NCBI GenBank assembly: GCA_001179505.1
Contig: CDMY01000738.1
Span: 124,001 to 188,000 of the forward strand
Direction of reading: 5' to 3'
Origin: Vitrella brassicaformis CCMP3155
Lineage: Eukaryota > Protista > Chromerida
DNA length: 64,000 nucleotides
The notes beneath the pieces are model-generated. The model searched no databases, was not told where the DNA came from, and saw only the letters and a program-made list of their open reading frames with translations. The position numbers and the translations under genes were made by a program. Positions 10,857 to 63,992 of this stretch are shown here, piece by piece; position 1 is the stretch's first letter, and each line of letters begins with the position of its first letter.

Positions 10857-13071
10857 TATGAGCTGATTGTTTCCGATGTGCGACGCGTCTTGATCATTCG
10901 AAACTCAGACAAAGAGATCCTCGTGGATGTACAGCGACAACAGTCGATCTGTCCTCACACGCAGACGCGTACACACACATCAGACTGCGAGACACACAAT
11001 CAGCCGAACGTGTGAGGGTCGCCTGCGCACACACCACAACACACACAGACACACACTCACGACACGCATGTCCATCGATCGATCGATCTGACTCGTCTGT
11101 CTACCTTTCCTGAGTTTTGTGTTGAGTTGGGGTTCTCTGTAGTCGATGGCCGTCCTCTCCCTCATTCGCCTCGGCCGTCGCTCCTCTCCCCCTGTCCGAC
11201 CCCGACCATCACAGCTCGCCCCCTGCTGGTGCTGGTGCTGGCGTTGGTGTGTTGGGGCGGAGGATGACGGCGGTCTGTGTCGCTTGACGAAGAAGGGATA
11301 GAAGTCGAGCGGGCCGTCTGCATTTGAGCGGCGGCGCAGCTTGGCGGTGAGTTTGAGGGATAGTGGGCAGTAGTTGACGCCTCGGCTGTGGTTGCGCAAG
11401 TGATAGCGACATCCATCCACACACTCGCTGACCTCACGCTCATCCTCACCAACATCGTCTCTGCACACACACAAACTCACACACCCATAAGCACACACAC
11501 ACAATGTCTCGGTGTCTCACTTTTGGCTGACCTGTGCTGCGGTGAGTCTGCATTGTCATTGTTGCCGTGTGGGTGTTGTGGTGGGTCGGTGCGATGGTGG
11601 TCGGGAGTGTCATTGATGTGCTGTGGCGGCGTGTGTGGGGCCGGCTGCTGCTGCTGCTGCTGCTGTTCGTCTTCATCATCATTGTCATCATGTTCCTGCA
11701 TTCGGTTGGATGGGATGGGCGAGAGGGCGGGGCGATACCGACGGTGGGGATTGTGATTGTTGTTGGCGGTGAGTCGCCCCACACGAACACCGCTAGCCGT
11801 CAGACTGCCGAGACGATGATGGTGGGCAACAGGCAAAGGGGATGCCACACGAACCTGACACATACAAGAGACACGCAGTGAGTGCGCATCGGTGTCTTCG
11901 TGTGTGGTTGGTTGACGTGTGATTGATTGTGTTGTCCCCTTCGCTGCCGCAGCACATGATTCTCGACCACCTCACTTTGGGTGAGTGAGTGTTTGTCTGT
12001 GTCACGAGTCTGTTGATGGCGCTCCTCTGCGCGTCGATGATCCGCCTGGAGTAATCGATGTGAACCACACAGACACAAAGATGAGCTGTCAGGTGTGTCG
12101 GCTCCCCTGATTCACTCACTCGTAGTATTGTGCGATGCTGTCAATGTCGCGCGGCACGCCCGCCCGCCGCCAGCGATACTGAACTGCACCAGACGGCGGC
12201 AATGGCGGCCTCACACACCACTCATCATCACGATCATGCCACTTCCGAGACACACAACCGCGAACGGTCACAAATACTAGTCACTCGTCCAACGACAGAG
12301 AGGAATTGATTGTCCAAACGATCGATCGGTGTACATGTATAGTCGGCAATGCAACGGTCATCAACAAATGGGCTCAGTCAATCACACAGCCGGCAACACA
12401 GATCGCTCTCGTGATTCATGTTTCGTCAGCTGCCGCCTGTCGCTGCTGACCTGGCCCTCCCTCTCCATCTCACCTCGTGGCCGCCTCGACCCATGGCACT
12501 TCTGAGCGGCGATCTGCCGCAAAATTGAAGGGCAACAATACAATACCAGCAGACAATGAATGCGGCTGACTGCATAGTATTGTCACCTCACCTTCCCTTG
12601 GAGCCTTCGACCGCAGCCTCCAGTCGCCGCCGCCTGGCCGCCTCCTGAACAACGCATGAAGGACCATACAGACATAAGTAGCACCACCACAAAGAGGCTG
12701 CAGCCGACTGACCTTCTTGTTGAGAGCGGCTTCTCGGCTGACGAGTGCATCGAACAGTCGTGTGAAGTCATCGTCATTGTCGATGGCACTGCGGAGAGCA
12801 TCCTCGAAGGCCGACCGGACGGCTGAGGGAAGGGCCGGCAGGAGAGGAAGGATGCCGGGCACGTGATCCAGGCTCTGGCGGATGACCCCGGCCGTCAGAC
12901 GGATGACTCGGCTCTGAGCTGCGATGGATGCGGGGGTTATGGTGGTGAGCCTGCCGTCGAAGAGCTGTTTGAGCATGTCGTTTGTGTCCCGCTTGTCCCC
13001 GAGGATGGCCTTGAGGGTTGTCGTCTGGGCCTGTCGGGCATGGAGCGGTGTTTGCTGCTCGGTGAGGAGGG
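10857..13071 (+). repeat. Segmental duplication block A (direct repeat of 61745-63992)
   Basis: Near-identical sequence from atga(g/a)ctgattg(t/c)ttccgatgtgcgacgcgtc... to ...gaggagggaa, including non-coding DNA, with scattered substitutions and small indels. Confidence 0.95.
10980..12200 (-). CDS. Hypothetical low-complexity (His/Gln/Asp-rich) multi-exon gene within block A
   Basis: Exon-like segments YRWRRAGVPRDIDSIAQYYE, DYSRRIIDAQRSAINRL, CRYHLRNHSRGVNYCPLSLKLTAKLRRRSNADGPLDFYPFFVKR are conserved in both copies. This copy lacks 23 bp near 11971 that carry an apparent acceptor in the other copy. Confidence 0.35.
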
Positions 13072-13198
13072 AAGGCAGGGCCTTGGTGCTGCTGATGGCG
13101 GTGCTCTGGTGCCACGGGGAAAACATAAGGCCTCGTTGTGTCGAGCCCAGGGCCGACAGCGTCAAGGAGAAGGTGAAGACAAGCCACACAAACATCAC
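12382..13198 (-). CDS. Protein homologous to the C-terminal helical domain of the adjacent BTB proteins (no BTB domain seen)
   Basis: VPGILPLLPALPSAVRSAFEDALRSAIDNDDDFTRLFDALV aligns with VAAVLPIIPGLPAPVQTAFEDALKGAVDAQDDECFHQLYDAFV; last exon GSRRPRGEME resembles GTKRPREEME. Start uncertain. Confidence 0.55.
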
Positions 13199-13247: not shown

Positions 13248-15652
13248 ATGAGTGGTCTTGTCGAGCCGTCCATCAGTGTTCGCTTCGCTGGCGATGGCGA
13301 GGCAGATGAGCCGGTGGTCGTCAAGGAGAGCGTGGCACATTCCTTCACGTACTTCCTCCAGGTGGGCAATTTTTTTATATTCAAGTCAGACACACAGCAC
13401 CAGACGCAGCAGATGAGAGATGCACATCGGCCCGCTTCGTCTGTGTGTTCGTCACACAACATAGGTTCTTGATGGCGGCTTTCAGGAGGGCCAGCAGCGT
13501 GAGGTGCGCATCGAGCGGATCAGTCGGGCCGTCGGTGTGGTGGTGCTGCAGCACGAGCTGGACATCATCAAGTCGCTGACCAAGGACAACCTGCTGGACG
13601 CGATGATTGCACTCGACTATCTGCAGTTCGACACCGACAAGGTCTTCACACCGGGCAGCAGCGCGAGTCTTCTCTGGCGCATCCATCGCAACGTGCGCTA
13701 TAGGACGGCAGACAGGCACGTGAGCTGCGAGTTGATGTGTCCTTGGTCTGTCTGTTACAGGTAGTGGTGGAGGGGTGGCTGCGTGATTCTCAGCTCGCCA
13801 CCACTCTGCTGGACAGCTTCAGTCACTACGCCTTCATCGCCCGCTTCATCCACCAGCACCCCGACATTCGCACGGCCCTGCTGCCGGCGCTGTGCAAGAA
13901 GCCCGACGTCATCAGTGCTCAGTGGCGTCGGTGTGAGAGAGGGGAGGACGAGACGAACGACTCCATCGAGGCGGCCATCAGCCTGGTGGACAGCCTGGTG
14001 GATGGGCTATCCCATGGTCGCATCGATATTGGCAACCAGGAGGTCGCCCAGTTCATCACAAAGGCGACTGGCTCCGAATCACTGGCTGCTGCATATGGTA
14101 CGAGGGGAGGCAGCGGGCTGCAATGCCTACTTGGATCATTGCCCTGCTGTGTTGTGTCTGGATGCAGCGGCTGCCTTCGAGGCTGACGTGTTCGCCGACC
14201 GCGCAGTGATGACCACACAGCCCTTCGCTAACAACCAGCAGGGATCCGTGACGTGCCTCGGGTTCTCGGTCACAGTCGCGGGCCTTCCCCATCCCTACAC
14301 CCCTCCCAATTCCGGTCCCACATCCAGCAGTGACCCGCCCCCCAACGCCATACGCGACGGCGATGCGAAGGTTGCTGATATCGGCGGCTGGCGCGTGGTT
14401 TTCGAGAGGGCTGATGATGGCACACCAGTGGAGTCGCCCCCAACGTGCTTCGCCTCTGACGCCTCCCTGGAGATTGCCAGTGGTGGTGACAGCGATGGCA
14501 CAGTCCGGCTGCACGGGGACCCCGAGATGATAGGGAGGATCCACATGGGGGACGACGGCCCGTCTGTGCGTCGCTTCGCTCTACAGATACTGAGAGGCGG
14601 GATTGGGACCTGCCTCAACCGACGCAACATCTCGGCTGAGTCGCTCGCCCAGCAAGGGGCGGGAGAGGCGCGGCTCAAGGACGTCAAGATGACCATGACG
14701 GTGCGACATTTCCCGATGCGTGCTCTCGCCCTTCACTACCTCCGGCTGTGTGTCAAGGAGGGGCGATGGGATGACGTCAAACACATGGCCAGGTGAACAA
14801 CGAGGGAGCACAAACGCATTAATGCACAGACACATTGGTGGTGCATTGCTCGATTGTTTGTCTGCCTGTGCAGGTCGATTCGTCGTGAGGTCGCTCTTTA
14901 CATGCTGACGTGCCTGGCTCAAGTGCGCCACCATCGCCTCCGACTCATGCTGTGCTGGGCGGCAGCGGTCGGCGATCTGCCTGAGAAGCACAGCGAACGC
15001 ATCGTATCGAAGCTGACGACCGATCTCATTGAGGAAAATCCTGCTGATGTGGCCGCCGTCCTTCCCATCATACCCGGCCTCCCAGCACCAGTGCAGACGG
15101 CCTTCGAGGATGCTCTCAAGGGAGCTGTTGACGCACAAGATGACGAATGTTTCCACCAGCTGTACGATGCTTTTGTCGAGGTCAGCCGATGCCATTCAGT
15201 TGTCTGGCTGTCCCTCTGTGTCCTCTCACCCACTATTGCTCTGTGTGCTTGGATGTGTATCTGGCACACAGGAGGCGGCCGAGCGGCAGCGTTTCGAGGT
15301 CGAGAAGGAACAGCTGCGTCAGGAGAGAGATCAGGTGCGTCAAGTACCAGCCACACCTGTTCCTTTCTCTGCGCCACGGTCTGTTTGTGTGTACTTGTTT
15401 TGGCTATGCAGGAGAAGGCCGCTCGGCAGCGTTTGGAGGCCGAGGTCGAGCGCCTGCGGCAGGAGAATGATCAGGTACCCCCACAAAAGCCGATTGCTTG
15501 CCCGAGTGAAGCAACACAGTGGCTTCTTTTGTATCACTCAGCTACGTCGCGGAACGAAGCGGCCACGAGAGGAAATGGAGGGCCACCACCACCAGCACCA
15601 GAGGCAGCAGCAGCAGCAAGAGGGCGAGGCTGACCACGAGATGAAGTCGTGA
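13248..15652 (+). CDS. BTB/POZ-domain protein, lineage-expanded family, copy 1 (about 7 exons)
   Basis: HSFTYFLQ/VLDGGFQEGQQREVRIERISRAVGVVVLQH...LLDAMIALDYLQF fits the BTB signature (S.yF...l.g.f.E....v.i); followed by helical region, beta-rich middle region, coiled-coil and polyQ/H tail. Confidence 0.8.
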
Positions 15653-16536
15653 TGGGTGGGTGACATGCAGCCGGTGACCCAGTGGCGGCGGTGGCTGTGC
15701 TGCATATAGACATACTTATGAATGAGAGCCTCATGTGTGTGGTCCGTGCCGTGATGGATTCGATTTCGTCTTGTGTGCTCTATTGACTTGGGTGCTGCAT
15801 TATCACGGTCACCGGGAGGAGGGGCATTGATGGCAACACTGCTGCTGCTGTTCCTTCCTTGCCTACCTTACCTGCCTGCTGCCAGTGAGTGCTCGTCTGA
15901 CTGTCTCCCTGTCTGGCTGACTGTCTGCCTGCCTGCCTGGCGCCCAGCATTGAGTAGCTAGCTACCGGCACCACACTCTCATGTCAGTGCGCTTGTCGCA
16001 AGCACGAGTTTGAGTTGTTGACTGACATGAGTGCCTTCGTATTTGTGTCTGTCTTATCTGTCTGCCTGTCTGTATGGCTGCACAAATGTGTGAGCTCCTT
16101 TTTCCATTCATCCGATCCATCCGCCGTCGTGCTGCTGTGAGTGAGTGCGGTGGTGCCCGTACGTACGTGGGGCCGACAGACAGCTCTGTGACATTCGTTT
16201 GCTGTCGATTGATAAGTGAATCAAATCAATGAGGGTCATCAACGTCATCCATCCATCCAACACACACACAGACAGACAGAGCGTCCACACACACACGAAT
16301 GCCCCTCAAGCATCACAGCAATGGGCCGTCCACATCGTGATCCAGCCCCAATCGACGTGTGTGGACGGACACGCAAAGAAAAATCTCGTCGATCGTCCGT
16401 CGCATTCATCAAATGTCCGCAGGGTAATCGGACAGTCGACCGATCGACCACGTGCACTAGCCCACCTCATCAGCCCAAGCCGCACGAAAACCCAGCCAAG
16501 ACACCGACGGCCTCTCCAGAGAAATAAATGAGTCAG

Positions 16537-18069
16537 TCACGAAGAGGGGCCAAGCGTCGCATCTTCGAGACCATACCGCCTCAGCAGCTGCCGCACGGCC
16601 GGCGTGGTGATGGGGAACCGCTCGTCGAAACCCCACCCATCCACCGCCTCCACCTCGGTCGTCTTTACCGCAACGCGCCCGCCATCGCTGCCGTCGCCAT
16701 CGAGGTGTACAAAGGCCACCACAGACCCACCCCCCAGCATTAAGACCACCATGCGGCCCCCCCTCGAACATTCCTGTTGCCAATCGATGACGATGCAGGC
16801 TGCTTGAAGTTCGTCTGATTCAGTGGCCAAGGAGGACTCCTGCAGCAGAGACAGATACCCGGCATGGTACGAACCCACATCGGCAGAGATCACCGTCCTC
16901 AGGCCGGTGGCTTCCACTTGCAACAAGGTGGCGATTGCAAATGAGCTGAAAGAGGGATAGACATTATTACCACCGATGCGCCGGCCGCAGATGACGGGCG
17001 GATCGCCCTCATGATACATGTGGCTCCCAAACCACTCGTCCCTTTCGCCAATGCGGAACCGCTTACTGCCCCCGATGCGGAACCATCGCACCCGCCTCAA
17101 CCTTACAAGCGGCACGTGCGATACGACACAACCGAACACAAACGCGAAAACAGAGGCCGCCATGATGAAGCCGCCGTCCAGAATGAAACTGATAACGATG
17201 AAGCAATACCAATGCTCAACCACATCTACAAGATCGTCATAGCTCGGAGGCGGAGCAGTGGCATCCCACCAAAAGAGCAGGATTCGCACGGCCATCCACC
17301 CGCAGGCCACCACATAGACGGCGGAAACGGCTAAGGTCAGGAGAAAACTCAGGAGAAAATTCAGCGGCCAGGACGGCGCGACAATCATAAAAGTCCACCC
17401 CTTCTTGCCCTCCGTCAGCTGGAGGCCCTCATCCGAGCTGCCCGGGTGGGAGTCGTCACTGTGGAGCTGACCCCCGAGCGTCTTGTAGACGGCCATGGCA
17501 GCCGGCAGCCGCTGGAAGCTGGCCTTGTCGGGCACATGAGCCGCCACACTCTCAGCCGATAGCACCAGGGGCAGCTCGCCAGCAAAACCGCAGACACGCG
17601 CCAGCTTGATAAATGTGACCATCGTGGGCCACTGAGCCGCCTGCTCGATGACGTAGGCGCAGCGAGCGAGATACCCAAGCCGCGAGAGGGATGGCGGCAG
17701 TGGAGGGGCCGAGGGGTCGATGCCGCGGTTCCTCTCGACGTCGATGAGGCCGGTGAGCTGCTGCTGGGCGAGGGAGCTGTCGATGCGCCATAGGAAGGCC
17801 TCGTCAATCAGCTGAGAGCTGTATGCCTTGCCGACCGCCCGGGCCCTCACAGTCTCGTCCACAGGCAGCAAAGAGGCGAACACACGGCCCAGGACATCCG
17901 GCAGAAGGTCTTGACCGTCGCCAGCCCCATCAGCGATGACGATCTCGAGGTGCTGCTGAGTGTCGGAATCGCTGACGTCACCATCAGCAGTGGCTCCTGA
18001 TAGCAGCGGCCAACTGTCGGCGACTCTCCGATAATCAGCGGAGCGGCGTGTCCACGGCAGCCAGGCCAT
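16537..18069 (-). CDS. Intronless F-box-like protein with internal two-helix transmembrane hairpin, copy 1
   Basis: Single ORF of about 510 aa from MAWLPWTRR; F-box-like LLPDVLGRVFASLLPVDETVRARAVGKAY; hydrophobic LNFLLSFLLTLAVSAVYVVACGWMAVRILLFWW and WYCFIVISFILDGGFIMAASVFAFVFGCVV. Confidence 0.75.
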   Translation of the reverse strand: MAWLPWTRRSADYRRVADSWPLLSGATADGDVSDSDTQQHLEIVIADGAGDGQDLLPDVLGRVFASLLPVDETVRARAVGKAYSSQLIDEAFLWRIDSSLAQQQLTGLIDVERNRGIDPSAPPLPPSLSRLGYLARCAYVIEQAAQWPTMVTFIKLARVCGFAGELPLVLSAESVAAHVPDKASFQRLPAAMAVYKTLGGQLHSDDSHPGSSDEGLQLTEGKKGWTFMIVAPSWPLNFLLSFLLTLAVSAVYVVACGWMAVRILLFWWDATAPPPSYDDLVDVVEHWYCFIVISFILDGGFIMAASVFAFVFGCVVSHVPLVRLRRVRWFRIGGSKRFRIGERDEWFGSHMYHEGDPPVICGRRIGGNNVYPSFSSFAIATLLQVEATGLRTVISADVGSYHAGYLSLLQESSLATESDELQAACIVIDWQQECSRGGRMVVLMLGGGSVVAFVHLDGDGSDGGRVAVKTTEVEAVDGWGFDERFPITTPAVRQLLRRYGLEDATLGPSS

Positions 18070-18400
18070 CCACCAGCCACCACTGCAGCCACCACTGCAG
18101 CCACACAGATGCCACACAGATCAGCGTGGGGTCATGAGTGTTTTAAGTCGGTGTGTCTGGAAGTACTTGAGAGCTCGATGGTCAGCGGACAGCGGCTCCA
18201 GATCTAGGCAGATTTGCCAAGCTCGCAGTGTTCTGTCGAGTCAAGCAGGGTCTGTCGAGTCATCCCTTCTCTCTCCCCTTCCCTCTCCCAGGTGCGCGTG
18301 GATGTGCGAGGGAGAAACGTTTTGGAAAGCACGTTTGCTTACGTACTTCGTTTCGCTTCGGTTTCCTCTTCTCCCGCGTCAGATCTGGCGGCCGAGCTGC

Positions 18401-21400
18401 ATGAAGACAGTCATGAGTACTGCCCCGCCTCCATACGCTCCCGAGTGGTCTGCTGATGACGCCAAGCAAGTGAACGTGACGGTGCAGCCGGTGTCCAACC
18501 CTCACGTCTACGGACAGCCGCTCACAATGGATCCGGGCACTGCCCCGCCTCCATACGCTCCCGAGTGGTCTGCTGATGACGCCAAGCAAGTGAACGTGAC
18601 GGTGCAGCCGGTGTCCAACCCTCACGTCTACGGACAGCCGCTCACAATGGATCCGGGCAAGGACACAGCGGCCCTCGGGAAACCTGCCGCAACATCCTCG
18701 TCGGGGTGCTGGCGCTGCATCTTGGATGAGCATGGCAAGATCAGGCTGTGGGCGTGCTGCCTCATAGGCCTTCTGGTCATCTTGGTGATCGGTGGCATCG
18801 TCGGGGTCATCCTCGCGAAGACACTCGGGGGTGACGCGTTCGGCGGCGACACGGTCGACCTGGTCATACAGAGTGCCAACACCAAGGAGCTTTGGCTGCA
18901 GCGAATGGTATGCATGTCGTATGGACGAATGCAGCGGACGAGGCGATTTGTGAGGTCGTTTGCATCTGTATGTGTTATGGCTATGGCTGGCAGGTCGAGG
19001 ACTTCAACCGTGAGCAGGAAAAGCAGCACCGCCGCAGACGCCTCCAATCGGCCCCCGACAACGGGACCAACGACACCAAACGGATTGTGGCCAAGGTCAG
19101 TGGATGAGCGACTGACGCCGTGACCTTCCACACCTCCCGCTCTCCTCTCTGCGCATCGTTGCATCCGTCGATTGCATGAGCAGGTGCATCACACGGGCAG
19201 CACGTACGACGAGAGCCTCAAGCCCAACATCTGGTCGCCAGCCAACCGCCTGTGGGTGCGCCTCAAGAACGAGGAGACGGGGGCGGTGGCCATCGTGTCC
19301 GACATCGACAACCTGTGCTTCTCCACCACAACCATCCCGCTGGGCCTCGCCATCTGGAGGAAGCTCGCGACGGCACTCGGATGGCCTGATGCTGACATTG
19401 GCTGGAAAGACATCGCGGATTTGGCCAAGGTGGGGGAGAATATCGATCGGCGTGTAGGTATCTGCTCTTTGTTGTATTCGTCCATAGAATGAAAGCGGCT
19501 GGGGTGCGGTGGATCCATCCCTGGCGGTCCGCGGTCGGTTCTCGTACGGCCATGGGCATCCCGAGTCGTCCAACAGCGGCCGCCTTAGCTTCCTCGCATC
19601 CATATACGCATACCGAGGGGGGGAGGACCCGCTGCAAGCCGACGATCTGAAAGGTGTGTCGACTGGCCATACGAGCAGGGGTGTCTTTGGTTCGTGTGTC
19701 ATCTGCTTTGTGCTGGGACGGCAGATGCGGAGATTGTGGCGTCTATCCGGTCGCTGGCCAGATCGGTGACACACATGGGACATGTAAGTGAGAGCAGCGC
19801 ACCAGCGGTGGATCGATGGTGTGGATTTGTGTGTGTGTGTGTGTCGTGTCAGATTGACACCGACATCTTGGCAAGGTGGGTAGTTCATCGATCGATGTGC
19901 TCTGGTTGTTCGTCCATGTGTGTGTCGCTGCTCGAGTGTGCAGGATGGTCGAGCGAGGCCCCGGCTACCTCAACGCCGTCGTAAGCCGACATGCAGGACA
20001 GCACGATGCGCGCACGGCTGCGTATTCCTGCACAACCTGCAGGCCAACTATGAGTCCAACGTCATCAGCTGGAACAAAGACAAGGCCGCCGAACTGAGTG
20101 AGTGGGGCTGTAAAGGTCATCTACAGCACCGTCGGCTGTTTATGGATCCATCTTTTTCTGCTGCTGTCTGTTTTTCATTGTGCAGGTGCATGGGATGACG
20201 GTACACACACACATGGATGATGGAAAACGAACGCATCGATCGATATGTCAGAACCGGCGGCCGTTCTCTGTCTGTCGCACATGTCTGTCTGCAGACTTCG
20301 TCTTCATCTACCCATCGGACGGCACGTAAGCAGACAGAAATGACCACTGATTATGTGTTTCGTTCCCTGAAAGGACGTCACACGACGTCACACGACAGGT
20401 ACTGGATGGACCACCCGTTCTGTGTGGTCGACGGCGTTGAATGGACCACCGATGAACAGGTCCGCCCCTCAATCCATACTCACGGCGTGCCCGTGTCCTT
20501 CCCCATGGATCTGTGGCTGCGTCCTTCCCCGCTCGTTTAGGCTGAGGCTGCTCTGACGTTCATCCGCTATGTCACTGACAAGGACAGAAACGACATGCTG
20601 CTGGACTACGGCATCAGACCCTTCAGCGGGCGAAGGGAGGTCTCATCGGAAGGTAAGGTAACTCAGTGGCGTGCAGAGAGAGAGCACTGAACTGATGCTA
20701 GCTAGCATCACATCTCCCTCTCTCTCGTGTCTCCGTCTGCTTGGATAGGGTTTCCTCCGTTTACGCGAGAGAATGGCGTGATCCCGACCAAGAACCCCAC
20801 GAACGTGCCGCAGCTGCCCTTCCCCGACACCTCCGTCATCAGAGCCGTCATTGACACGTGGAAGGCCAACAAGAAGCCGGCCGTGGTCAGTGAGTGAGTC
20901 TGTCAGGCACCGCACCCATCCCACGATGATGATGATGATGGCCATCCTTGTCTTGTCTGCCTGCATACACACGCGTGTGTTGTGTTGTGTTGTGTTGTGT
21001 TGTGCAGGTGGTCCTGACTGTCGACACGTCTGGGTCGATGAGAGGCGGCAAACTGCAGGAAATGAAAGCAGGTACACTAGCTGCCATGGTGTGGTGGGCG
21101 AAAGCGCAGGAGCGACATGACGCCTGATGGTTGTTTCTGTGGTCGGTTCTGTCAGCTGTTGGCGAGTTCCTGAATGCCATGCAGCCGCATGACGAGGTGC
21201 GCACCCTCGGACGGCCGGATCGATCATCCCAACCATGTCTTTGTTTCTTTAATGTGTGTCTGTTGGCTGCTCGGTGTGCAGCTGTATCTGATCCGCTTCT
21301 CGGAGGATGTGCAGTTGCTCGAGCAGCAGTCTGGTGAGTGGTGGGTGGGTCAGCCACACGGACGAACGGCCAACACATTCGTATAGACAGTTGTTGCTGT

Positions 21401-22129
21401 CTTTCTGTGCTGTTGATGCAGGGCTGATTGGCGAGAAGAGGGACGAACTCCTGGCGGTCGTCGACAACTTTGTGGCCGGTGAATAAGATGCGATAAACAC
21501 ATCACACACAAGGCTGTGCGCTGATGGACGGATGCACTTGTCCGTGCGTGTCTTCTCCCTTTACCGCTCCATGCGTCGCGTCAGGTGGTGCGACGGCCCT
21601 GTACAACGCCACCCGTGACAGCCTGGAACTGATCGCCGCCATGCGGGCTGCTGCAAACGACACCTTCGACAAATCATGGGACGTCGTCATCATGACCGAC
21701 GGCATGGACGAAGGTGAGTTGAGTCAGTGAGTGGGGGAGGAGGGAGGCACGGACCCATCTCACTCCCTGACGTGTCTGGCTGCCTGCCTCCGTGTGTGCA
21801 GGTGAGAACCACATCAGCAAGGACGAGGTCTACTCGATGTTGCCTGGAAGCGAAGACCCCACTGGTATTTTCTGGATGGCATTGCACACACAGAAAGAGG
21901 GAGAGAGGAAAGGCCTTTCGATTTGTGGCCCTCCGTGTGTGTCGTTGTGTGTGTGTGTGCAGCTGTGCACATCTACAGTGTGGCGTTTGACTTCAACGAC
22001 AACTCGGCCCAGGCCCAGGCGGGCCGCGACTTCCTCCGAACCATAGCTGAGGACAGCAACGGCAAATACTTCGCCCCCGACGCACGCAGCCTCAGCCTCG
22101 TCTACAACCTCATCTCACAGGAATTCTGA
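18401..22129 (+). CDS. Type II membrane protein: PPPY repeats + TM + bacterial-type extracellular solute-binding domain + vWA domain (about 17 exons)
   Basis: TM LWACCLIGLLVILVIGGIVGVIL; SBP_bac_11-type motifs FSYGHGHPESSNSGRLSFLA, GPGYLNAV..YESNVISWN, IYPSDGTYWMDHPF, W..DEQAEAA..F; vWA MIDAS DTSGS, GGATALY, MTDG, and RTIAEDSNGKYF at the C-terminus. Confidence 0.88.
18419..18659 (+). repeat. Perfect 120-bp in-frame tandem duplication (2 x 40 aa)
   Basis: Sequence 18421-18538 is repeated exactly at 18541-18658; encodes TAPPPYAPEWSADDAKQVNVTVQPVSNPHVYGQPLTMDPG twice. Confidence 0.98.
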
Positions 22130-44445: not shown

Positions 44446-44734
44446 CGTCAGTCACAACAATCACGAGGGGAAGGAGAGGGACTCGGAAACACGAATGAAA
44501 GGATTCTCCGAAACACTTGCGAGCTTTGTGCGAGCTTCGCGAATGGATCTGCCCCCGCCTTGCTCCACGATCCTGGATCTGGAGCCGCTGTCCGCTGACC
44601 ATCGAGCTCTCAAGTACTTCCAGACACACCGACTCAAAACACTCATGACCCCACGCTGATCTGTGTGGCATCGGTGTGTCTGCAGTAGGCTGCAGTGGTG
44701 GCTGCAGTGGTGGCTGCAGTGGTGGCTGCGGTGG

Positions 44735-46240
44735 ATGGCCTGGCTGCCGTGGACACGCCGTTCCGCTGATTATCGGAGAGTCGCCGACAGTCAGCCGCTG
44801 CTATCAGGAGCCACTGCTGATGGTGACGTCAGCGATTCCGACACTCAGCAGCACCTCGACATCGTCATCGCTGGTGGGGCTGGTGACGGTCAAGACCTGC
44901 TGCCGGATGTCCTGGGCCGTGTGTTCGCCTCATTGCTGCCTGTGGACGAGTCGGTGAGGGCCCGGGCGGTCGGCAAGACATACAGCTCTCAGCTGATTGA
45001 CGAGGCCTTCCTATGGCGCATCGACAGCTCCCTCGCCCAGCAGCAGCTCACCGGCCTCATCGACGTGGAGAGGGACCGCGGCGTCGACCCCTCGGCCCCT
45101 CCACTGCCGCCGTCTCTCTCGCGGCTTGGGTACCTCTCTCGCTGTGCCTATGTCATCGAGCAGGCGGCTCAGTGGCCCACGATGGTCACATTCATCAAGC
45201 TGGCGCGTGTCTGCGGTTTTGCTGGCCAGCTGCCGCTGGTGCTATCGGCTGAGAGTGTGGCGGCTCATGTGCCCGACAAGGTCAGCTTCCAGCGGCTGCC
45301 GGCTACCATGGCCGTCTACAAGACGCTCGGGGGTCAGCTCCACAGTGACGACTCCCACCCCAGCAGCTCGGATGAGGGCCTCCAGCTGACGGAGGGCAAG
45401 AAGGGGTGGACTTTCTTGATTGTAAAGCCGATTTGGCCGCTGAATTTTCTCCTGAGTTTTCTCCTGACCTTAGTCTTTTCCGCCGTCTATGTGGTGGCCT
45501 GCGGGTGGGTGGTCGTGAGAATCCTGCGATGGACTTACAATGACACTTTTGGGCATGACGACAATCTTGGCGATCTCTTTGTGGATTGGCTGGTCTTCAT
45601 CTTTGTTGGCGGCATCCTGAACATCTGCTTCCTTATAGGGGCCTCTGCTTTCGGGTTTGTGTTCGGTTTGCACGTATGGCACCTGCCGCTTGTGAGGTTG
45701 AGGCGACTGCGATGGTTCCGCATCGGGAAGCAGCACCGTTTCCGCCTTGGCGAAAGGGACGAGTCGTTTGGGAGCTATCACGAGTGCGATCCGCCCGTCA
45801 AGTGCGGCCGGCGCACCTTTCCCTCTTTCAGCTCATTCGCAATGGCCTCGTTGATGAAGCGAGCGGAACAACCCGGATCTTCCATGAGGACGGTGGTCTC
45901 TGCCGATCTCGGCCGGAACCATGTCGGCTATCTGTCACTCCTGCGCGGCTCCTCCTTGGCCGCTGAATCAGACGCAGCCCGCATCGTCATCGATTGGCAA
46001 CAGGACTGCGTGAGGGGGGGCCGCATGGTGGTCTTAATGCTGGGGGGTGGGACTGTGGTGGCCTTTGTACACCTCGATGGTGACGGCAGCGATGGCGGGC
46101 GCGTTGCCGTAAAGACGACCGAGGTGGAGGCGGCGGATGGGGGCGGGCTCGACGAGCGGTTCCCCATCACTACGCTCGCCGTGCGGCAGCTGCTGCGGCG
46201 GTATGCTCTCGAAAATGAGACGCTTGGCCCCTCGTCATGA
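44735..46240 (+). CDS. Intronless TM-F-box-like protein, copy 2
   Basis: Paralog of 16537-18069; 12 differences counted by eye in the first ~228 aa, then a highly divergent TM loop. A 12-bp repeat ggctgcagtggt precedes the ATG. Confidence 0.75.
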   Translation: MAWLPWTRRSADYRRVADSQPLLSGATADGDVSDSDTQQHLDIVIAGGAGDGQDLLPDVLGRVFASLLPVDESVRARAVGKTYSSQLIDEAFLWRIDSSLAQQQLTGLIDVERDRGVDPSAPPLPPSLSRLGYLSRCAYVIEQAAQWPTMVTFIKLARVCGFAGQLPLVLSAESVAAHVPDKVSFQRLPATMAVYKTLGGQLHSDDSHPSSSDEGLQLTEGKKGWTFLIVKPIWPLNFLLSFLLTLVFSAVYVVACGWVVVRILRWTYNDTFGHDDNLGDLFVDWLVFIFVGGILNICFLIGASAFGFVFGLHVWHLPLVRLRRLRWFRIGKQHRFRLGERDESFGSYHECDPPVKCGRRTFPSFSSFAMASLMKRAEQPGSSMRTVVSADLGRNHVGYLSLLRGSSLAAESDAARIVIDWQQDCVRGGRMVVLMLGGGTVVAFVHLDGDGSDGGRVAVKTTEVEAADGGGLDERFPITTLAVRQLLRRYALENETLGPSS

Positions 46241-47207
46241 CTGACTCATTCATTTCTCTGGAGAGGCTGTCGGTGTCCTGGTTGGGTTTCCGTGCGGTTT
46301 GGGCTGTAATGGGGTGGGTGGGCCAGTGCACGTGGTCGATCGAATGTCCGATTACCCTGCGGACATTCGATGACTGCGACGGACGATCGACGAGATTTTT
46401 CTTTGCGTGTCCGTCCACACGAGTCGATTGGGGCTGGATCACATCATGGACGGCCCATTGCTGTGATGGTTGAGGGGCATTCGTGTGTGTGTGGACGGCT
46501 CTGTCTGTGCTGGTGGCTGATGGATGGATGGATGGATGACGTTGATGACCCTCATTGATTGATTCACTTATCAATCGACAGCAAACGAATGTCACAGAGC
46601 TGTCTGTCGGCCCCACGTACGTACGGGCACCACCGCACTCACTCACAGCAGCACGACAGCCAATGGATCGGATGAAATGGAAAAAGGAGCTCACACATTT
46701 GTGTAGCCAGGCAGGCAGGCAGACAGATAAGATAGACACAAATACAAAGGCACCCATGTCAGTCAACAACTCAAACTCGTGCTTGCGAGCGTGAAGTGAC
46801 ATGTGTGTGCATGCACAAAGCTACTGACCTGAGAGTATGGTGCCGGTAGCTGGCTACTCAATGCTGGCCGCCCAGCTGCATGATCGATTCTTCCTCGTGC
46901 ATTAAAGCGGCATGACAGGCAGACAGTCAGACAGTCAGACAGTCAGACGGGCAGGCACTCACTGGCTGCAGACAGGTAAGGTAGGCCAGGGAGGAACAGC
47001 AGCAGCAGTGTTGCCATCAATGCCCCTCCTCCAGGTGACCGTGATAGTGATAATACAGCACCCGAGTGAATAGAGCACACAAGCCGAAATCGAATCCATC
47101 ACGGCACGGACCACACACATGAGGCTCTCACTCATAAGTTTGTCCATATGCAGCACAGCCGCCACTGCCGGTGGGTCAGCCGCCGCATGTCACCCACCAC
47201 ACATACA

Positions 47208-49588
47208 TCACGACTTCATCTCGTGGTCGGCCTCGCCCTCTTGCTCCTGCTGCTGCTGGTGGCCCTCCATCTCTTCTCGTGGCCGCTTCGTTCCGCGACG
47301 TAGCTGAGTGATACAGAAGAAGCAAGCCACTGTGTTTGGTTCACTCGGGCAAGCAATCGGGTTTTGTGGGGGTACCTGATCATTCTCCTGCCGCAGGCGC
47401 TCGACCTTGGCCTCCAAACGCTGCCGAGCGTCCTTCTCCTGCATAGCCAAAACAAGTACACACAAACAGACCGTGGGAGGGCACAGAGAAAGGAACAGGT
47501 GTGGCTGGTACTTGACGCACCTGATCTCTCTCCTGACGCAGCTGTTCCTTTTCGGCCCCGAAACGCTGCCGCTCGGCTTCATGAGCCTTCTGCCGATCAG
47601 TCGCCTCCTGTGTGCCAGAGACACATCCAAGCACACAGAGCAATAGTGGGTGAGAGGGCACAGAGGGAATATCAGACCGCCGAATGGGATCGGCTAACCT
47701 TGACAAGAGCATCGTACAGCTGATGGAAACGTTTGTCTCCTCGTCCGTCGAAGGCCTCCTCGACGGCCTCCGTGACTGCGGTGTCGAAGGCCGTGCGCAC
47801 TGCTGCTGGGAGCGTGGGCAGGACGGGGAGGACAGCAGCCACATCAGCAGGATTCTTCTCAATGAAGCCGGCCGTCAGCTTCGAAACGATGATGTCACAG
47901 CTCTTCTCCGGCAGATCACCGACCGCCGCCGCCCAGCACAGCATGAGTCGGAGGGGGTGATCGCGCACCTTGATCAGGTACTTCAGTATGCGAAGAGCGA
48001 CCTCACGACGAATCGACCTGAAAAGGCGGACACCAATCGAGCCATGCACCACCAGTGTATCTGCAGCTGTGCATTAATGCGTTTGTGTTCCCTCTTTGCT
48101 CACCTGGCCATGTGTGTGACGTCATCCCACCGCCCCTCCTTGACACACAGCCGGAGGTAGTGAAGGGCAAGAGCGCGCATCGGGAAGTGTCGCACCGTCA
48201 CTGCCATGATGACGTCCTTGAGCCGCGCCTCTCCCGCCCCTTGCTGGGCAAGCGACTCGCGCGAGATGTTGCGTCGGTTGATGAACGTCGTGCCCCTGCC
48301 TCCCCCCAGCACCTGCACAATGAAGCGACGCACAGACGGGCCGCCGTCCCTCATGCGGATCTCCCTACTGGCCGCCTCGTGTAGCTCGATGACCTTCCGG
48401 CCGGCACCGCTGTGTGCTGCTCGCGCCGCTGCCGCCGTGCCATCGCCATCAGCACCACCGCCGGCGATCTCCAGAGAGCCGTCAGCAGCGAAGCACCTCA
48501 CGAACGACTCCCCCTCCGCGCCGTCATCGACACTGTTGAAGGCGATGTCCCAGCCGCCGACGTCTGCAATTTTCGCATTGCCGTCGCCTATGGCGTTGGG
48601 GGGCGGGTCACGAGATGTGGGAGCGGAATTGGGAAGGGTGTAGGGATGGGGAAGACCCGCGAGCGTCATCGAGAACCCGAGGCACGTCACGGATCCCTGC
48701 TGGTTGTTGGCGAAGGGCTGTGCGGTCACTGAAGAGGGCTCAATGAACACGTCAGCCTCGAAGGCAGCCGCTGCAGCAGACACAACACAGCAGGGCAATC
48801 ATCCAAGTAGGCATTGCAGCCCGCTGCCTCCCCTCGTACCATATGCGGCAGCTAATGATTCAGAACCGGTGGCCATCGTGATGAACTGGGCGACCTCCTG
48901 GTGGCCAACATCGATGCGACCATGGGATAGCCCATCCACCAGGCTGTCCACCAAGCTGATGGCTGCTTCGATGGCGTCATTCGTCTCGTCCTCGCGTTTC
49001 TCACGCCGACGCCACTGGGCACTGATAACCTCGGGCTTCTTGCGCAGCGCCGGCAGCAGGGCCGTGCGAATGTCCTTGTGCTGGTGGATGAGGCGGGCGA
49101 CGAAGGCGTAGCGGCTGAAGCTGTCCAGCAGACTGGTGGCGAGCTGATTGTCATGCAGCCAGCCTCCCACCACCACCTGTAGCACACAGACCAAGGACAC
49201 ATCAACTCGCAGCTCACGTGACCCTCTTAACTTGTTTAGCGCACCTTGCGATGGATGCCCCAGAGCAGGCTTTGGTTGCTGCCCGGTGTGAAGATCTTGT
49301 CGGTATCGAACTGCAGGTAGTCGAGTGCAATCATCACATCCAGCAGGTTGTCATTGCTCAGCGAATCGATGATGTCCAGCTCATGCTGCAGCACCACCAC
49401 ACCGACGGCTCGGCTGATCCGCTCGATGCGCACTTCACGCTGCTGGCCCTCCTGGAATTCGCCATCAAGGACCTGCACGGACGCACACAGAGATGAGGAA
49501 TGGCCACGGGCATTTCTGATCTGCTGCGTCCGGTGCTGTGTCTGACCTGCTGGAAGTACTTGATGGACTGCTCGACGAGAGCACTCAT
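47208..49588 (-). CDS. BTB/POZ-family protein, copy 2, with 24-aa deletion in exon 1
   Basis: MSALVEQSIKYFQQ/VLDGEFQEGQQREVRIERISRAV... co-linear with copy 1 through ...EADHEMKS*. Confidence 0.75.
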
Positions 49589-61744: not shown

Positions 61745-63992
61745 ATGAACTGATTGCTTCCGATGTGCGACGCGTCTTGATCATTCGAAACTCAGACAAA
61801 GAGATCCTCGTGGATGTACAGCGACAACAGTCGATCTGTCCTCACACGCAGACGCGTACACACACATCAGACTGCGAGACACACAATCAGCCGAACGTGT
61901 GATGGTCGCCTGCGCACACACCACAACACACACAGACACACACTCACGACACGCATCTCCATCGATCGATCGATCTGACTCGTCTGTCTACCTTTCCTGA
62001 GTTTTGTGGTGAGTTTGGGTTCTCTGTAGTCGATGGCCGTCCTCTCCCTCATTCGCCTCGGCCCTCGCTCCTCTCCCCCTGTCCGCCCCCGACCATCGCT
62101 GCTCGCCCCCTGCTGGTGCTGGTGCTGGTGGTGCTGCTGTTGGTGTTGTTGGTGTGTTGGTGCGGAGGATGACGGCGGCCTGTGTCGCTTGACGAAGAAG
62201 GGATAGAAGTCGAGCGGGCCGTCTGCATTTGAGCGGCGGCGCAGCTTGGCAGTGAGTTTGAGCGATGGTGGGCAGTAGTTGACTCCTCGGCTGTGGTTGC
62301 GCAAGTGATAGCGACATCCATTCACACACTCGCTGACCTCACGCTCACCCTCACACTCATCACCCCTGACAGACACAAACTCACACACACACACACACAC
62401 ACACAATGTCTCGCTGTCTCACTTCTTGCTGACCTGTGCTGCGGTGTGTCTCCATTGTCATTGTTGCCGTGTGGGTGTTGTGGTGGGTCGGTGCGATGGT
62501 GGTCGGGAGTGTCATTGATGTGCTGCGGTGGAGTGTGTGGGCCCGGCTGCTTCTGCTGCTCTTGGTGTTCGTCATCGTTGTCATCATGTTCCTGCATGCA
62601 ATTGGATGGGATGGGCGAGAGGGCGGGGCGATACCGACGGTGGGGATTGTGATTGTTGTTGTTGGCAGTGGGGCGACCCACACGAACACCGCTAGCCGTC
62701 ACACTGCCAAGACGGTGATGGTGGGCAACAGGCAAAGGGGATGCCACACGAACCTGACACATGCACACAAACAGTGAGTGCGCATCGAGTCTGATTTTCG
62801 TGTGTGGTTGGTTGACGTGTGATTGATTGTGCTGTCCCCTTCGCTGCCGCAGCACGTGATTCTCGACCACCTGACGACAGACAAACACACTATCTCACTT
62901 TGGGTGAGTGAGTGTTTGTTTGTGTCACGAGTCTGTTGATGGCGCTCCTCTGTGCGTCGATGATCCGCCTGGAGTGATCGATGTAAACCACACAGACACA
63001 AAGATGAGCTGTCATGTGTGTCGGCTTGCCTGATTCACTCACTCGTAGTATTGTGCGATGCTGTCAATGTCGCGCGGCACGCCCGCCCGCCGCCAGCGAT
63101 ACTGAACCGCACCAGACGGCGGCAATGGCTGCCTCACACCACTCATCATCACGATCATGCCACTTCCGACACACACGACCAAGAACGCTCTCAAATACTT
63201 GTCACTCACTCAATGACCGAGGCGAATTCGTTTTGTCCAAACGACCGATCGGTGTACATGTACAGTCGCCATCCAACGGTCAATCAACAAATGGGCTCAG
63301 TCAATCACACAGCCGACAACACAGACCGCTCTCGTGACCCATGTTTGGTCAGCTGCCGCCTGTCGCTGTTGACCTGGCCTTCCCTCTCCATCTCACCTCG
63401 TGGCCGCCTCGGCCCATGGCACTTCTGAGCGGCGACCTGCCGCTAAAATTGAAGGGCAACAATACATACCAGCAGACGATGGATGCGGCTGACTGCACAG
63501 TGTTGTCACCTGCCCCTTGAAAGTTCGACCTCAGCCTCCAGTCGCCGCCGCCTGGCCGCCTCCTGAACAACACATGATGGACCATACAGAGATAAGTAGT
63601 ACCACCACGAAGAGGCTGCGGCCGACTGACCTTTTTGTTGCGAGCGGCTTCTCGGCTGACGAGTGCATCGAACAGCCGTGTGAAGTCATCGTCATTCTCG
63701 ACGGCGCTGCGGAGAGCATCCTTGAAGGCCGACCGGACGGCTGAGGGAAGGGCCGGCAGGAGAGGAAGGATGCCGGGCACGTGATCCAGGCTCTGGCGGA
63801 TGACCCCGGCCGTCAGACGGATGACTCGGCTCTGAGCTGCGACGGATGCGGGGGTTATGGTGGTAAGCCTGCCGTCGAAGAGCTGTTTGAGCATGTCATT
63901 TGTGTCCCGCTTGTCCTCGAGGATGGTCTTGAGGGTTGTTGTCTGGGTCTGTCGGGCGTGGAGCTGTGTCTGCTGCTGTTTGGCGAGGAGGG
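61745..63992 (+). repeat. Segmental duplication block A' (direct copy of 10857-13071; may continue beyond the window)
   Basis: Co-linear high-identity match to block A. Confidence 0.95.
61867..63140 (-). CDS. Hypothetical low-complexity gene, second copy (block A')
   Basis: Paralog of 10980-12200 with altered polyQ/H lengths. Confidence 0.35.

Follow-up and report, generated by a model that had tools for sequence, protein, structure and literature searches.

Two genes of a divergent F-box-like family of Vitrella brassicaformis carry a rapidly diversifying, putative membrane hairpin

The window analysed here is a 64,000-nucleotide stretch of contig CDMY01000738.1 from Vitrella brassicaformis CCMP3155, and it contains two copies, A and B, of an F-box-like gene whose product includes an inserted hydrophobic helical hairpin. 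The window is eukaryotic in character, with a G+C content of 55-63% over most of its length and few long open reading frames (ORFs), and the two copies lie on the arms of an inverted segmental duplication. The features of the two copies are listed below with residue numbers of each copy's own protein and, where available, the predicted local distance difference test (pLDDT) of the AlphaFold2 model.

16537..18069, minus strand: coding sequence of copy A, 510 codons plus a stop (16537-16539), in one exon
18022..18069, minus strand: conserved N-terminal peptide, residues 1-16, MAWLPWTRRSADYRRV, ending in the YxxPhi-like sequence DYRRV (18022-18036, residues 12-16)
17758..17910, minus strand: F-box-like motif, residues 54-104, LLPDVLGRVFASLLPVDETVRARAVGKAYSSQLIDEAFLWRID..., assigned from AlphaFold2 helices, the Pfam matches of relatives and a cyclin F profile match
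17380..17757, minus strand: residues 105-230, the N-terminal part of the family-specific domain, which shows strong conservation and has been homogenised between paralogues; pLDDT 88-96
17110..17379, minus strand: inserted hydrophobic helical hairpin of copy A, residues 231-320, with helix 1 at ~234-270, an acidic loop at ~269-286 (17212-17265) and helix 2 at ~278-318 (hydrophobic core 287-322)
16540..17109, minus strand: C-terminal part of the family-specific domain, residues 321-510, beta-rich and pairing with strand 218-230
44735..46240, plus strand: coding sequence of copy B, 501 codons plus a stop, an intact ORF by the ORF list and tblastn
45425..45688, plus strand: hairpin of copy B, residues 231-318, placed by alignment and hydropathy
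13382..18208, no strand assigned: arm 1 of the inverted segmental duplication, holding copy A and one neighbouring gene
44572..49549, no strand assigned: arm 2 of the same duplication, holding copy B

The public annotation of CDMY01000738.1 contains a 1533-nt single-exon gene whose product is identical to the 510 amino acids of copy A; positions on this contig equal window positions plus 124000. Under a bacterial ORF rule, the copy A frame extends over 16537-18117 on the minus strand, with its first ATG at 18069; a GTG start at 18117 was considered and dismissed in favour of this ATG, because the upstream stretch differs between the copies by a 12-nt repeat and relatives begin at the ATG. The repeat, GGCTGCAGTGGT (4.2 copies, window 44688-44739), overlaps the copy B ATG, and copy A is 24 nt shorter here. 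The ORF of copy B spans 44663-46240 on the plus strand and encodes 501 amino acids from its first ATG at 44735; an exact look-up of this product found no annotated gene on the public record. Both conserved modules of the unannotated copy differ from those of copy A with a ratio of non-synonymous to synonymous divergence (dN/dS, or omega) below 1. The two proteins are 77-79% identical by BLASTP, and the arms of the duplication are 84% identical over 5053 blastn columns, with nucleotide identity that is patchy (0.70-1.00 per 100 nt) outside the gene as well as within it. A tblastn search of the whole window found no copy of the family besides A and B.

Divergence between the two copies is distributed very unevenly along the protein. 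A reading made from the letters of the window alone (hereafter the sequence-only reading) had counted about 12 differences in the first ~228 amino acids, and BLASTP and MAFFT alignments recover 12 in residues 1-226. It had also called the loop between the two helices nearly unalignable and placed it at 17209-17286 and 45518-45589; these coordinates are correct to within 1-3 codons, and the loop is very divergent (~25% identity) but alignable with a single 2-codon gap (copy A residues 267-285). Its description of a divergent second helix and following ~100 residues agrees with a dN of 0.40 in helix 2 and 0.235 in residues 321-420, where three indels occur, as does its description of a C-terminal end that is alike again (dN 0.067 in residues 421-510, with 8 differing positions in the last 64). 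The F-box-like motif together with the N-terminal part of the domain has an A/B dN/dS of 0.30. Helix 1 is conserved between A and B, yet across the family both helices are as variable as the loop. The contrast between a conserved N-terminal module and a hyperdivergent hairpin is repeated in four other independent sister pairs, and the regional A/B pattern is therefore not a matter of chance.

Across these sister pairs, the hairpin accrues amino-acid changes faster than synonymous ones. By the Nei-Gojobori method, dN/dS in the hairpin is 1.49 for A/B, 1.39 for P0003/P0004 and 3.45 for P0009/P0005, where helix 2 alone carries 0.5 synonymous against 17.5 non-synonymous differences. It is 1.51 for P0007/P0008, whose second member is frameshifted and was compared only as DNA, read in the intact partner's frame with gapped codons skipped, and it is undefined for P0002/L005 copy a, with 0 synonymous and 10 non-synonymous differences. 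Non-synonymous change thus exceeds synonymous change in the hairpin of all five pairs, whereas the flanking modules are mostly below 1, the exceptions being the N-terminal module of P0007/P0008 (1.18) and the C-terminal end of P0009/P0005 (1.81). We pooled the pairs by pairwise GY94-F3x4 likelihood, with one omega common to the five non-overlapping pairs and the hairpin fit run from several starting points. The pooled omega of the hairpin is 2.20 (likelihood-ratio statistic against omega = 1 of 16.4, P = 5e-5), or 2.47 when the frameshifted pair is left out (16.3, P = 5e-5), compared with 0.54 for the N-terminal module and 0.50 for the C-terminal part.

Within the hairpin, sub-regions were fitted on the first three of these pairs only. 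Helix 1 has a pooled omega of 1.4-1.7, which is not significant, the loop 2.3-2.4 (P = 0.10-0.15) and helix 2 2.7-2.8 (P = 0.007-0.01). The diversification proposed by the sequence-only reading is therefore borne out for the hairpin as a whole, at a pooled dN/dS of 2.2, but not as a property of the loop, since helix 2 reaches 2.8 and the loop, at ~2.4, is not significant alone. Hairpin differences fall on codon positions 1, 2 and 3 in the ratio 69:60:44, so that third positions make up 25% of them compared with 44-46% elsewhere. The codon alignments are in register and compensated frameshifts are absent. The A/B dN in the hairpin is 0.33, compared with a divergence of 0.11 in the 3' non-coding flank, a threefold difference.

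The contrast between A and B has two superimposed causes, the excess of amino-acid change in the hairpin and gene conversion of the N-terminal module. Between A and B, the synonymous proportion that differs is 0.081 over residues 1-226, rises to 0.214 over residues 227-420 (Fisher P = 9e-4) and falls to 0.137 at the C-terminal end. Three tandem genes at locus L005 differ at a synonymous proportion of 0.03-0.11 in the N-terminal module versus 0.56-0.62 downstream (P <= 1e-21), a clear case of concerted evolution restricted to one module. Across this array (L005:1658-7479), the N-terminal modules are near-identical, and the hairpins and C-terminal parts are saturated (0.45-0.62). Gene conversion keeps the N-terminal module alike among neighbouring paralogues, and the remainder of each gene retains older divergence. 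The sequence-only reading had itself named neutral loop variation, explained by gene-conversion tracts, as a ground for giving it up; omega = 1 is rejected for the hairpin as a whole but not for the loop alone, and conversion of the N-terminal module does make up part of the A/B contrast.

Copies A and B belong to a large family that, judged by the clusters checked, appears confined to Vitrella. A word search returned 12 relatives at 36-47% identity, 10 of them with V. brassicaformis names, the remainder being one JGI sequence and one MMETSP transcript with no organism stated for either. A profile search of 1.84 billion representatives returned 89 clusters at E <= 1e-3 and 26 at E <= 1e-30, and all 20 clusters looked up are 'unnamed' or 'uncharacterized' proteins of V. 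brassicaformis. The collection of paralogues that the sequence-only reading had suggested thus comprises at least 89 clusters of relatives, including a hairpin subfamily of ~17 members. The family is built from two modules, N-terminal (profile positions ~40-210) and C-terminal (~305-481), which are found jointly or separately; many relatives have the C-terminal part of the family domain without the N-terminal F-box-like motif. Most relatives are 340-420 residues long, contain no hydrophobic segment and join the two modules directly.

The hairpin is carried only by A, B, P0002-P0015 and P0018, a subfamily of ~17 mostly single-exon genes, some of which lie in tandem or inverted arrays such as the three tandem copies at L005. 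An 87-sequence alignment places it between a conserved 'LxL' strand and a 'YRIG' strand. The site is occupied in other members by a turn of 5-6 residues, by acidic low-complexity tracts 17-74 residues long or even by TPR repeats, which argues that the hairpin is a ~90-residue insertion into a permissive surface turn of a beta-hairpin. Some members of the subfamily, at L004:6001-7480, L010:6001-7453 and L009:6001-7353, look degraded: P0008 has a 2-nt deletion within the hairpin that the annotation bridges with a 127-nt 'intron', P0014 has a similar gene model with a 124-nt 'intron', and P0013 is truncated, its C-terminal end missing. The possibility that the hairpin loop is itself an unspliced in-frame intron was considered and dismissed, because the gene models are single-exon, ~17 genes keep the hairpin open and hydrophobic, and two hairpin sequences are derived from transcripts, namely P0012 (MMETSP) and P0005 (a 1.9-kb JGI contig).

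Several predicted properties agree with the membrane hairpin proposed by the sequence-only reading. Kyte-Doolittle 19-residue means in copy A peak at 2.41 (residues 233-268) and 2.17 (287-325); all members of the hairpin subfamily have peaks of 2.2-2.8, and hairpin-less relatives have none. AlphaFold2 models two long helices here with a pLDDT of 76-88. In the subfamily, the loops measure ~9-29 residues and have a net acidic charge, and helix 2 is followed by a strongly basic stretch of 15 residues (7 K/R and 0 D/E in copy A). By the positive-inside rule, this charge distribution would leave both domain halves cytosolic and put the loop across the membrane, a placement that agrees with the single body built from the two halves in the AlphaFold2 model. 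Hydropathy, structure prediction and charge distribution thus concur in suggesting that the hairpin spans the membrane, with the F-box-like motif and both domain halves cytosolic and the loop lumenal or outside. A third transmembrane segment at residues 438-458 was considered and dismissed, because residues ~435-457 form conserved beta strands of the C-terminal part in the AlphaFold2 model. A further feature tracks the hairpin: 15 of the 17 full-length hairpin members, plus P0018, have the motif [SD]Y[RGCE][RK][VI], and none of ~80 hairpin-less relatives does. This YxxPhi-like motif, with variants such as DYRRV and SYRRV, co-occurs almost perfectly with the insertion, and the N-terminal peptide that carries it is a putative sorting signal.

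The case that the N-terminal motif is an F-box comes chiefly from the relatives of A and B. Pfam scans of the whole proteins of A, B and 12 paralogues gave no match. When the segments homologous to copy A residues 52-104 were taken from 37 relatives, seven of the 37 matched PF12937 (best E 4.6e-4) and three matched PF00646 (best E 4e-3), and no Pfam family except F-box was matched more than once. P0088 has a Pfam F-box match at the homologous position, scoring 15.6 bits against a cutoff of 24.3. A motif-only profile searched against 177,635 PDB sequences retrieved a single match, residues 34-67 of cyclin F, which are its F-box (E 0.12), in register at the LP dipeptide. AlphaFold2 places helices at residues 57-65, 70-79, 84-87 and 90-102 directly after L56-P57 (pLDDT 69-88), positioned as in an F-box, and six relatives have the UniRef label 'F-box domain-containing'. 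Depending on the protein, the N-terminal module stands in front of the family domain, of TPR repeats (P0038) or of a TLDc domain (P0071), a variety of C-terminal partners that makes this an F-box-typical domain combination. The F-box assignment of the sequence-only reading is thus plausible from the matches of relatives and the predicted helices, although A and B themselves lie under the curated Pfam thresholds, and we consider the motif to be probably a true but divergent F-box.

The domain that follows the motif resembles nothing found in the structural searches. AlphaFold2 run on a 14-sequence alignment gave an unusable model (pLDDT 49.7), and the Foldseek search made with it is meaningless. 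With 87 family sequences, the model of copy A has a mean pLDDT of 83.9 and a predicted template modelling score of 0.79. Residues 1-48 are disordered, and residues 105-230 and 321-510 form one mixed alpha/beta body; the order at the insertion is strand 218-230, helix 234-270, turn, helix 278-318 and strand 321-332. When this model was searched with Foldseek against PDB and BFVD, nothing reached E <= 1e-3; START-like folds ranked highest, at a non-significant E of 0.05-0.06. PDB sequence profiles built from the full-length alignments A1 and A2 had no match. A ~300-residue alpha/beta domain without a structural neighbour in PDB is a candidate new fold. Among the non-significant Foldseek rows are two-transmembrane, beta-rich bacterial or phage effectors, Cap15 (7n34, E 0.22) and a 'SMODS-associating 2TM' protein (E 1.2); these rows probably reflect merely a common layout of helices plus strands.

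We lean slightly towards a reading in which A and B are young inverted duplicates within a Vitrella-only family of divergent F-box proteins, and the hairpin is the specificity element of a membrane-embedded substrate adaptor of SKP1-cullin-F-box (SCF) ubiquitin ligases. In the body plan of the family, three helices resembling an F-box would form the N-terminal motif, and a family-specific alpha/beta domain, ~300 residues in length, would come after it. The hairpin would confer paralogue-specific specificity, most likely through helix-helix contacts with partner or substrate membrane proteins in the plane of the membrane, and the globular domain and F-box-like motif would couple the partner to cytosolic ubiquitination.

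A number of observations count against this interpretation. Neither the complete A and B proteins nor their motifs scanned separately match any Pfam family, even at E <= 10, the best family-level E-values for an F-box are marginal (4.6e-4 and 0.12), and Foldseek with the copy A model retrieved no F-box protein and nothing significant from PDB and BFVD. The omega values come from pairwise one-ratio models of short segments that were picked after the pattern was seen; one of the five pairs includes the frameshifted P0008, and P0005 may be an allele from another strain instead of a paralogue. Because the insertion site tolerates unrelated inserts, low constraint also accounts for much of the hairpin variability. 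Finally, the hydrophobic stretches, at 30-39 residues, exceed a standard membrane span, so that the hairpin may insert in a monotopic or wedge-like manner instead of spanning the bilayer.

The main alternatives differ in what they make of the hairpin. The sequence-only reading had proposed recognition outside and ubiquitination inside, and in the corresponding account the loop between the helices senses the outside or the lumen: every paralogue would use its loop to bind a different outside ligand, and the cytosolic F-box would then trigger ubiquitination. The loop is the most divergent A/B stretch (dN 0.75, omega 2.2 over 17 codons), acidic loops with flanking aromatic residues suit an exposed exoplasmic position, and the layout has a precedent in the 2TM families of Plasmodium, in which diversity is confined to the proposed surface loop (PMC1751529). 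The loop is nevertheless only ~9-29 residues long and lacks a fold of its own, its omega is not significant alone (P = 0.10-0.15), and a signal peptide and an ectodomain are both absent. The excess is higher, and significant, in helix 2 (2.8, P = 0.007), and helix 1 also exceeds 1 in P0003/P0004. With helices that diversify at least as much as so short a loop, at a site that is a general insertion hot spot, an outside-recognition receptor is unsupported as first stated, and we regard a loop sensor as very unlikely. Recognition within the membrane fits better, because the excess change in the helices equals or exceeds that in the loop, and a MARCH-like role of this kind would rank above an external receptor.

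An opposite view treats the hairpin as a mere anchor or tolerated insert that drifts almost freely, with the regional contrast due mainly to conversion and omega above 1 a model artefact. The middle of the gene has 2.6 times the synonymous divergence of the N-terminal module, the patchy identity runs along the entire duplication, unrelated inserts occupy the same site in other members, some members are decaying (the frameshift of P0008, the truncation of P0013), and the A/B omega alone is not significantly above 1 (P = 0.16). Conversion, however, raises dS and dN together and cannot therefore raise their ratio, and the pooled omega of 2.2 rejects omega = 1 (P = 5e-5) with all five pairs above 1. 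The signal is strongest in gap-free pairs, with 3.5 synonymous versus 31.5 non-synonymous differences in P0009/P0005 and 0 versus 10 in P0002/L005 copy a, and near-free drift seems to us an improbable account. It is similarly doubtful that the protein lies outside the ubiquitin system altogether, its helices merely F-box-like, its domain a Vitrella novelty and its two-helix insert perhaps acting on membranes directly. Copy A has no significant match in Pfam, PDB sequences or Foldseek, and the weak Foldseek rows do include Cap15, the 'SMODS-associating 2TM' protein and START-like folds. Cap15-type rows are, however, far from significance, F-box is the sole Pfam family matched repeatedly (7 of 37 motif segments), P0088 matches it at the homologous position, and the single PDB match is an F-box aligned at the LP dipeptide. 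The motif also stands N-terminal to varied domains, as in F-box proteins.

The Vitrella family shares its overall design with F-box SCF adaptors, with a variable domain placed behind a three-helix motif of the form LP-x-[DE]-[VL] at the N-terminus. In Caenorhabditis and in plants, F-box genes have undergone lineage-specific expansion, with positive selection acting on parts other than the F-box; the large, species-specific Vitrella family is likewise arranged in arrays, with a conserved adaptor end and another part that diversifies. Strong positive selection has been described for F-box genes of C. elegans (PMC8120010). Unlike in known F-box proteins, the motif of A and B is under Pfam thresholds, the domain that follows is without known relatives, and the diversifying part is a hydrophobic hairpin inside that domain instead of a soluble binding surface. 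Alveolate F-box proteins are hard to recognise from sequence alone (PMC11570480), and a family of at least 89 clusters would greatly enlarge the F-box repertoire of chromerids.

A second resemblance is to the membrane-associated RING-CH E3 ligases of the MARCH and viral K3-K5 type. The Vitrella proteins would share with them a cytosolic ubiquitin-ligase module attached to a hairpin of two helices whose lumenal loop is short. Substrate choice by MARCH and viral K3-K5 proteins is made largely through contacts of the transmembrane region (PMC3436574, PMC8319528). Unlike in MARCH proteins, Pfam detects no RING-CH domain in A or B, the Vitrella hairpin is in the middle of the protein, and the link to a ligase would be indirect, through SKP1 and cullin. 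A more speculative proposal, which we judge unlikely, is that Vitrella has evolved a family of SCF adaptors embedded in the membrane whose specificity is set by the transmembrane hairpin itself, with diversifying selection acting on it. Packing of helices within the membrane would then let each paralogue choose its own membrane-protein partner or keep it from pairing with its sisters, and the family would be a counterpart of MARCH built on an F-box. A hairpin that is both inserted into a folded domain and evolving with dN/dS > 1 is rare, and would offer a test case for specificity encoded within the membrane.

The third comparison is with the 2TM superfamilies of Plasmodium falciparum (Pfmc-2TM, STEVOR and RIFIN), which are likewise alveolate multigene families whose products have a short hypervariable loop between two hydrophobic helices. 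Because Vitrella lives freely as a phototroph, host immunity and immune evasion cannot drive the variation seen in its genes. There is no sequence relationship between the two groups (all 20 checked clusters of the family are from Vitrella), and the Vitrella proteins lack a signal peptide, an export motif and an N-terminal hydrophobic segment. Their hairpin is internal, between the two halves of a predicted cytosolic domain, and the variation reaches the helices. Amplified loci of high nucleotide identity make local divergence conspicuous in both groups, and in the Plasmodium families the hypervariable centre lies between the two helices (PMC1751529). The pattern of parasite surface-antigen families, conserved duplicated loci with a hypervariable two-helix core, can arise in a free-living relative; if hairpin-encoded specificity is true, the Vitrella genes would be a free-living precedent for the apicomplexan '2TM with a hypervariable centre' families.

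The surroundings of the two copies are also duplicated. A second segmental duplication, in direct orientation, comprises 10858-12887 and 61745-63805, ~50.9 kb apart; it adjoins the inverted duplication and is 88-98% identical in blocks. A second multi-copy family is co-amplified with the F-box-like genes, at 12470-13198 (minus strand), 14854-15633 (plus) and 47672-48052 (minus), and the annotated gene at ~13248-15652 (plus) belongs with it. Its members have a common '...LP..P.LP..V..AFEDAL...' region and no Pfam match. This family is 39% identical over 107 amino acids to the C-terminal part of P0042, a gene model that starts with an F-box-like motif, so P0042 is either a fusion or a merged gene model. 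Next to copy A, a neighbouring VWA-domain gene (~18178-22129, plus strand) contains a perfect tandem repeat of two 120-nt units at window 18419-18659, which encodes a doubled 40-residue unit.

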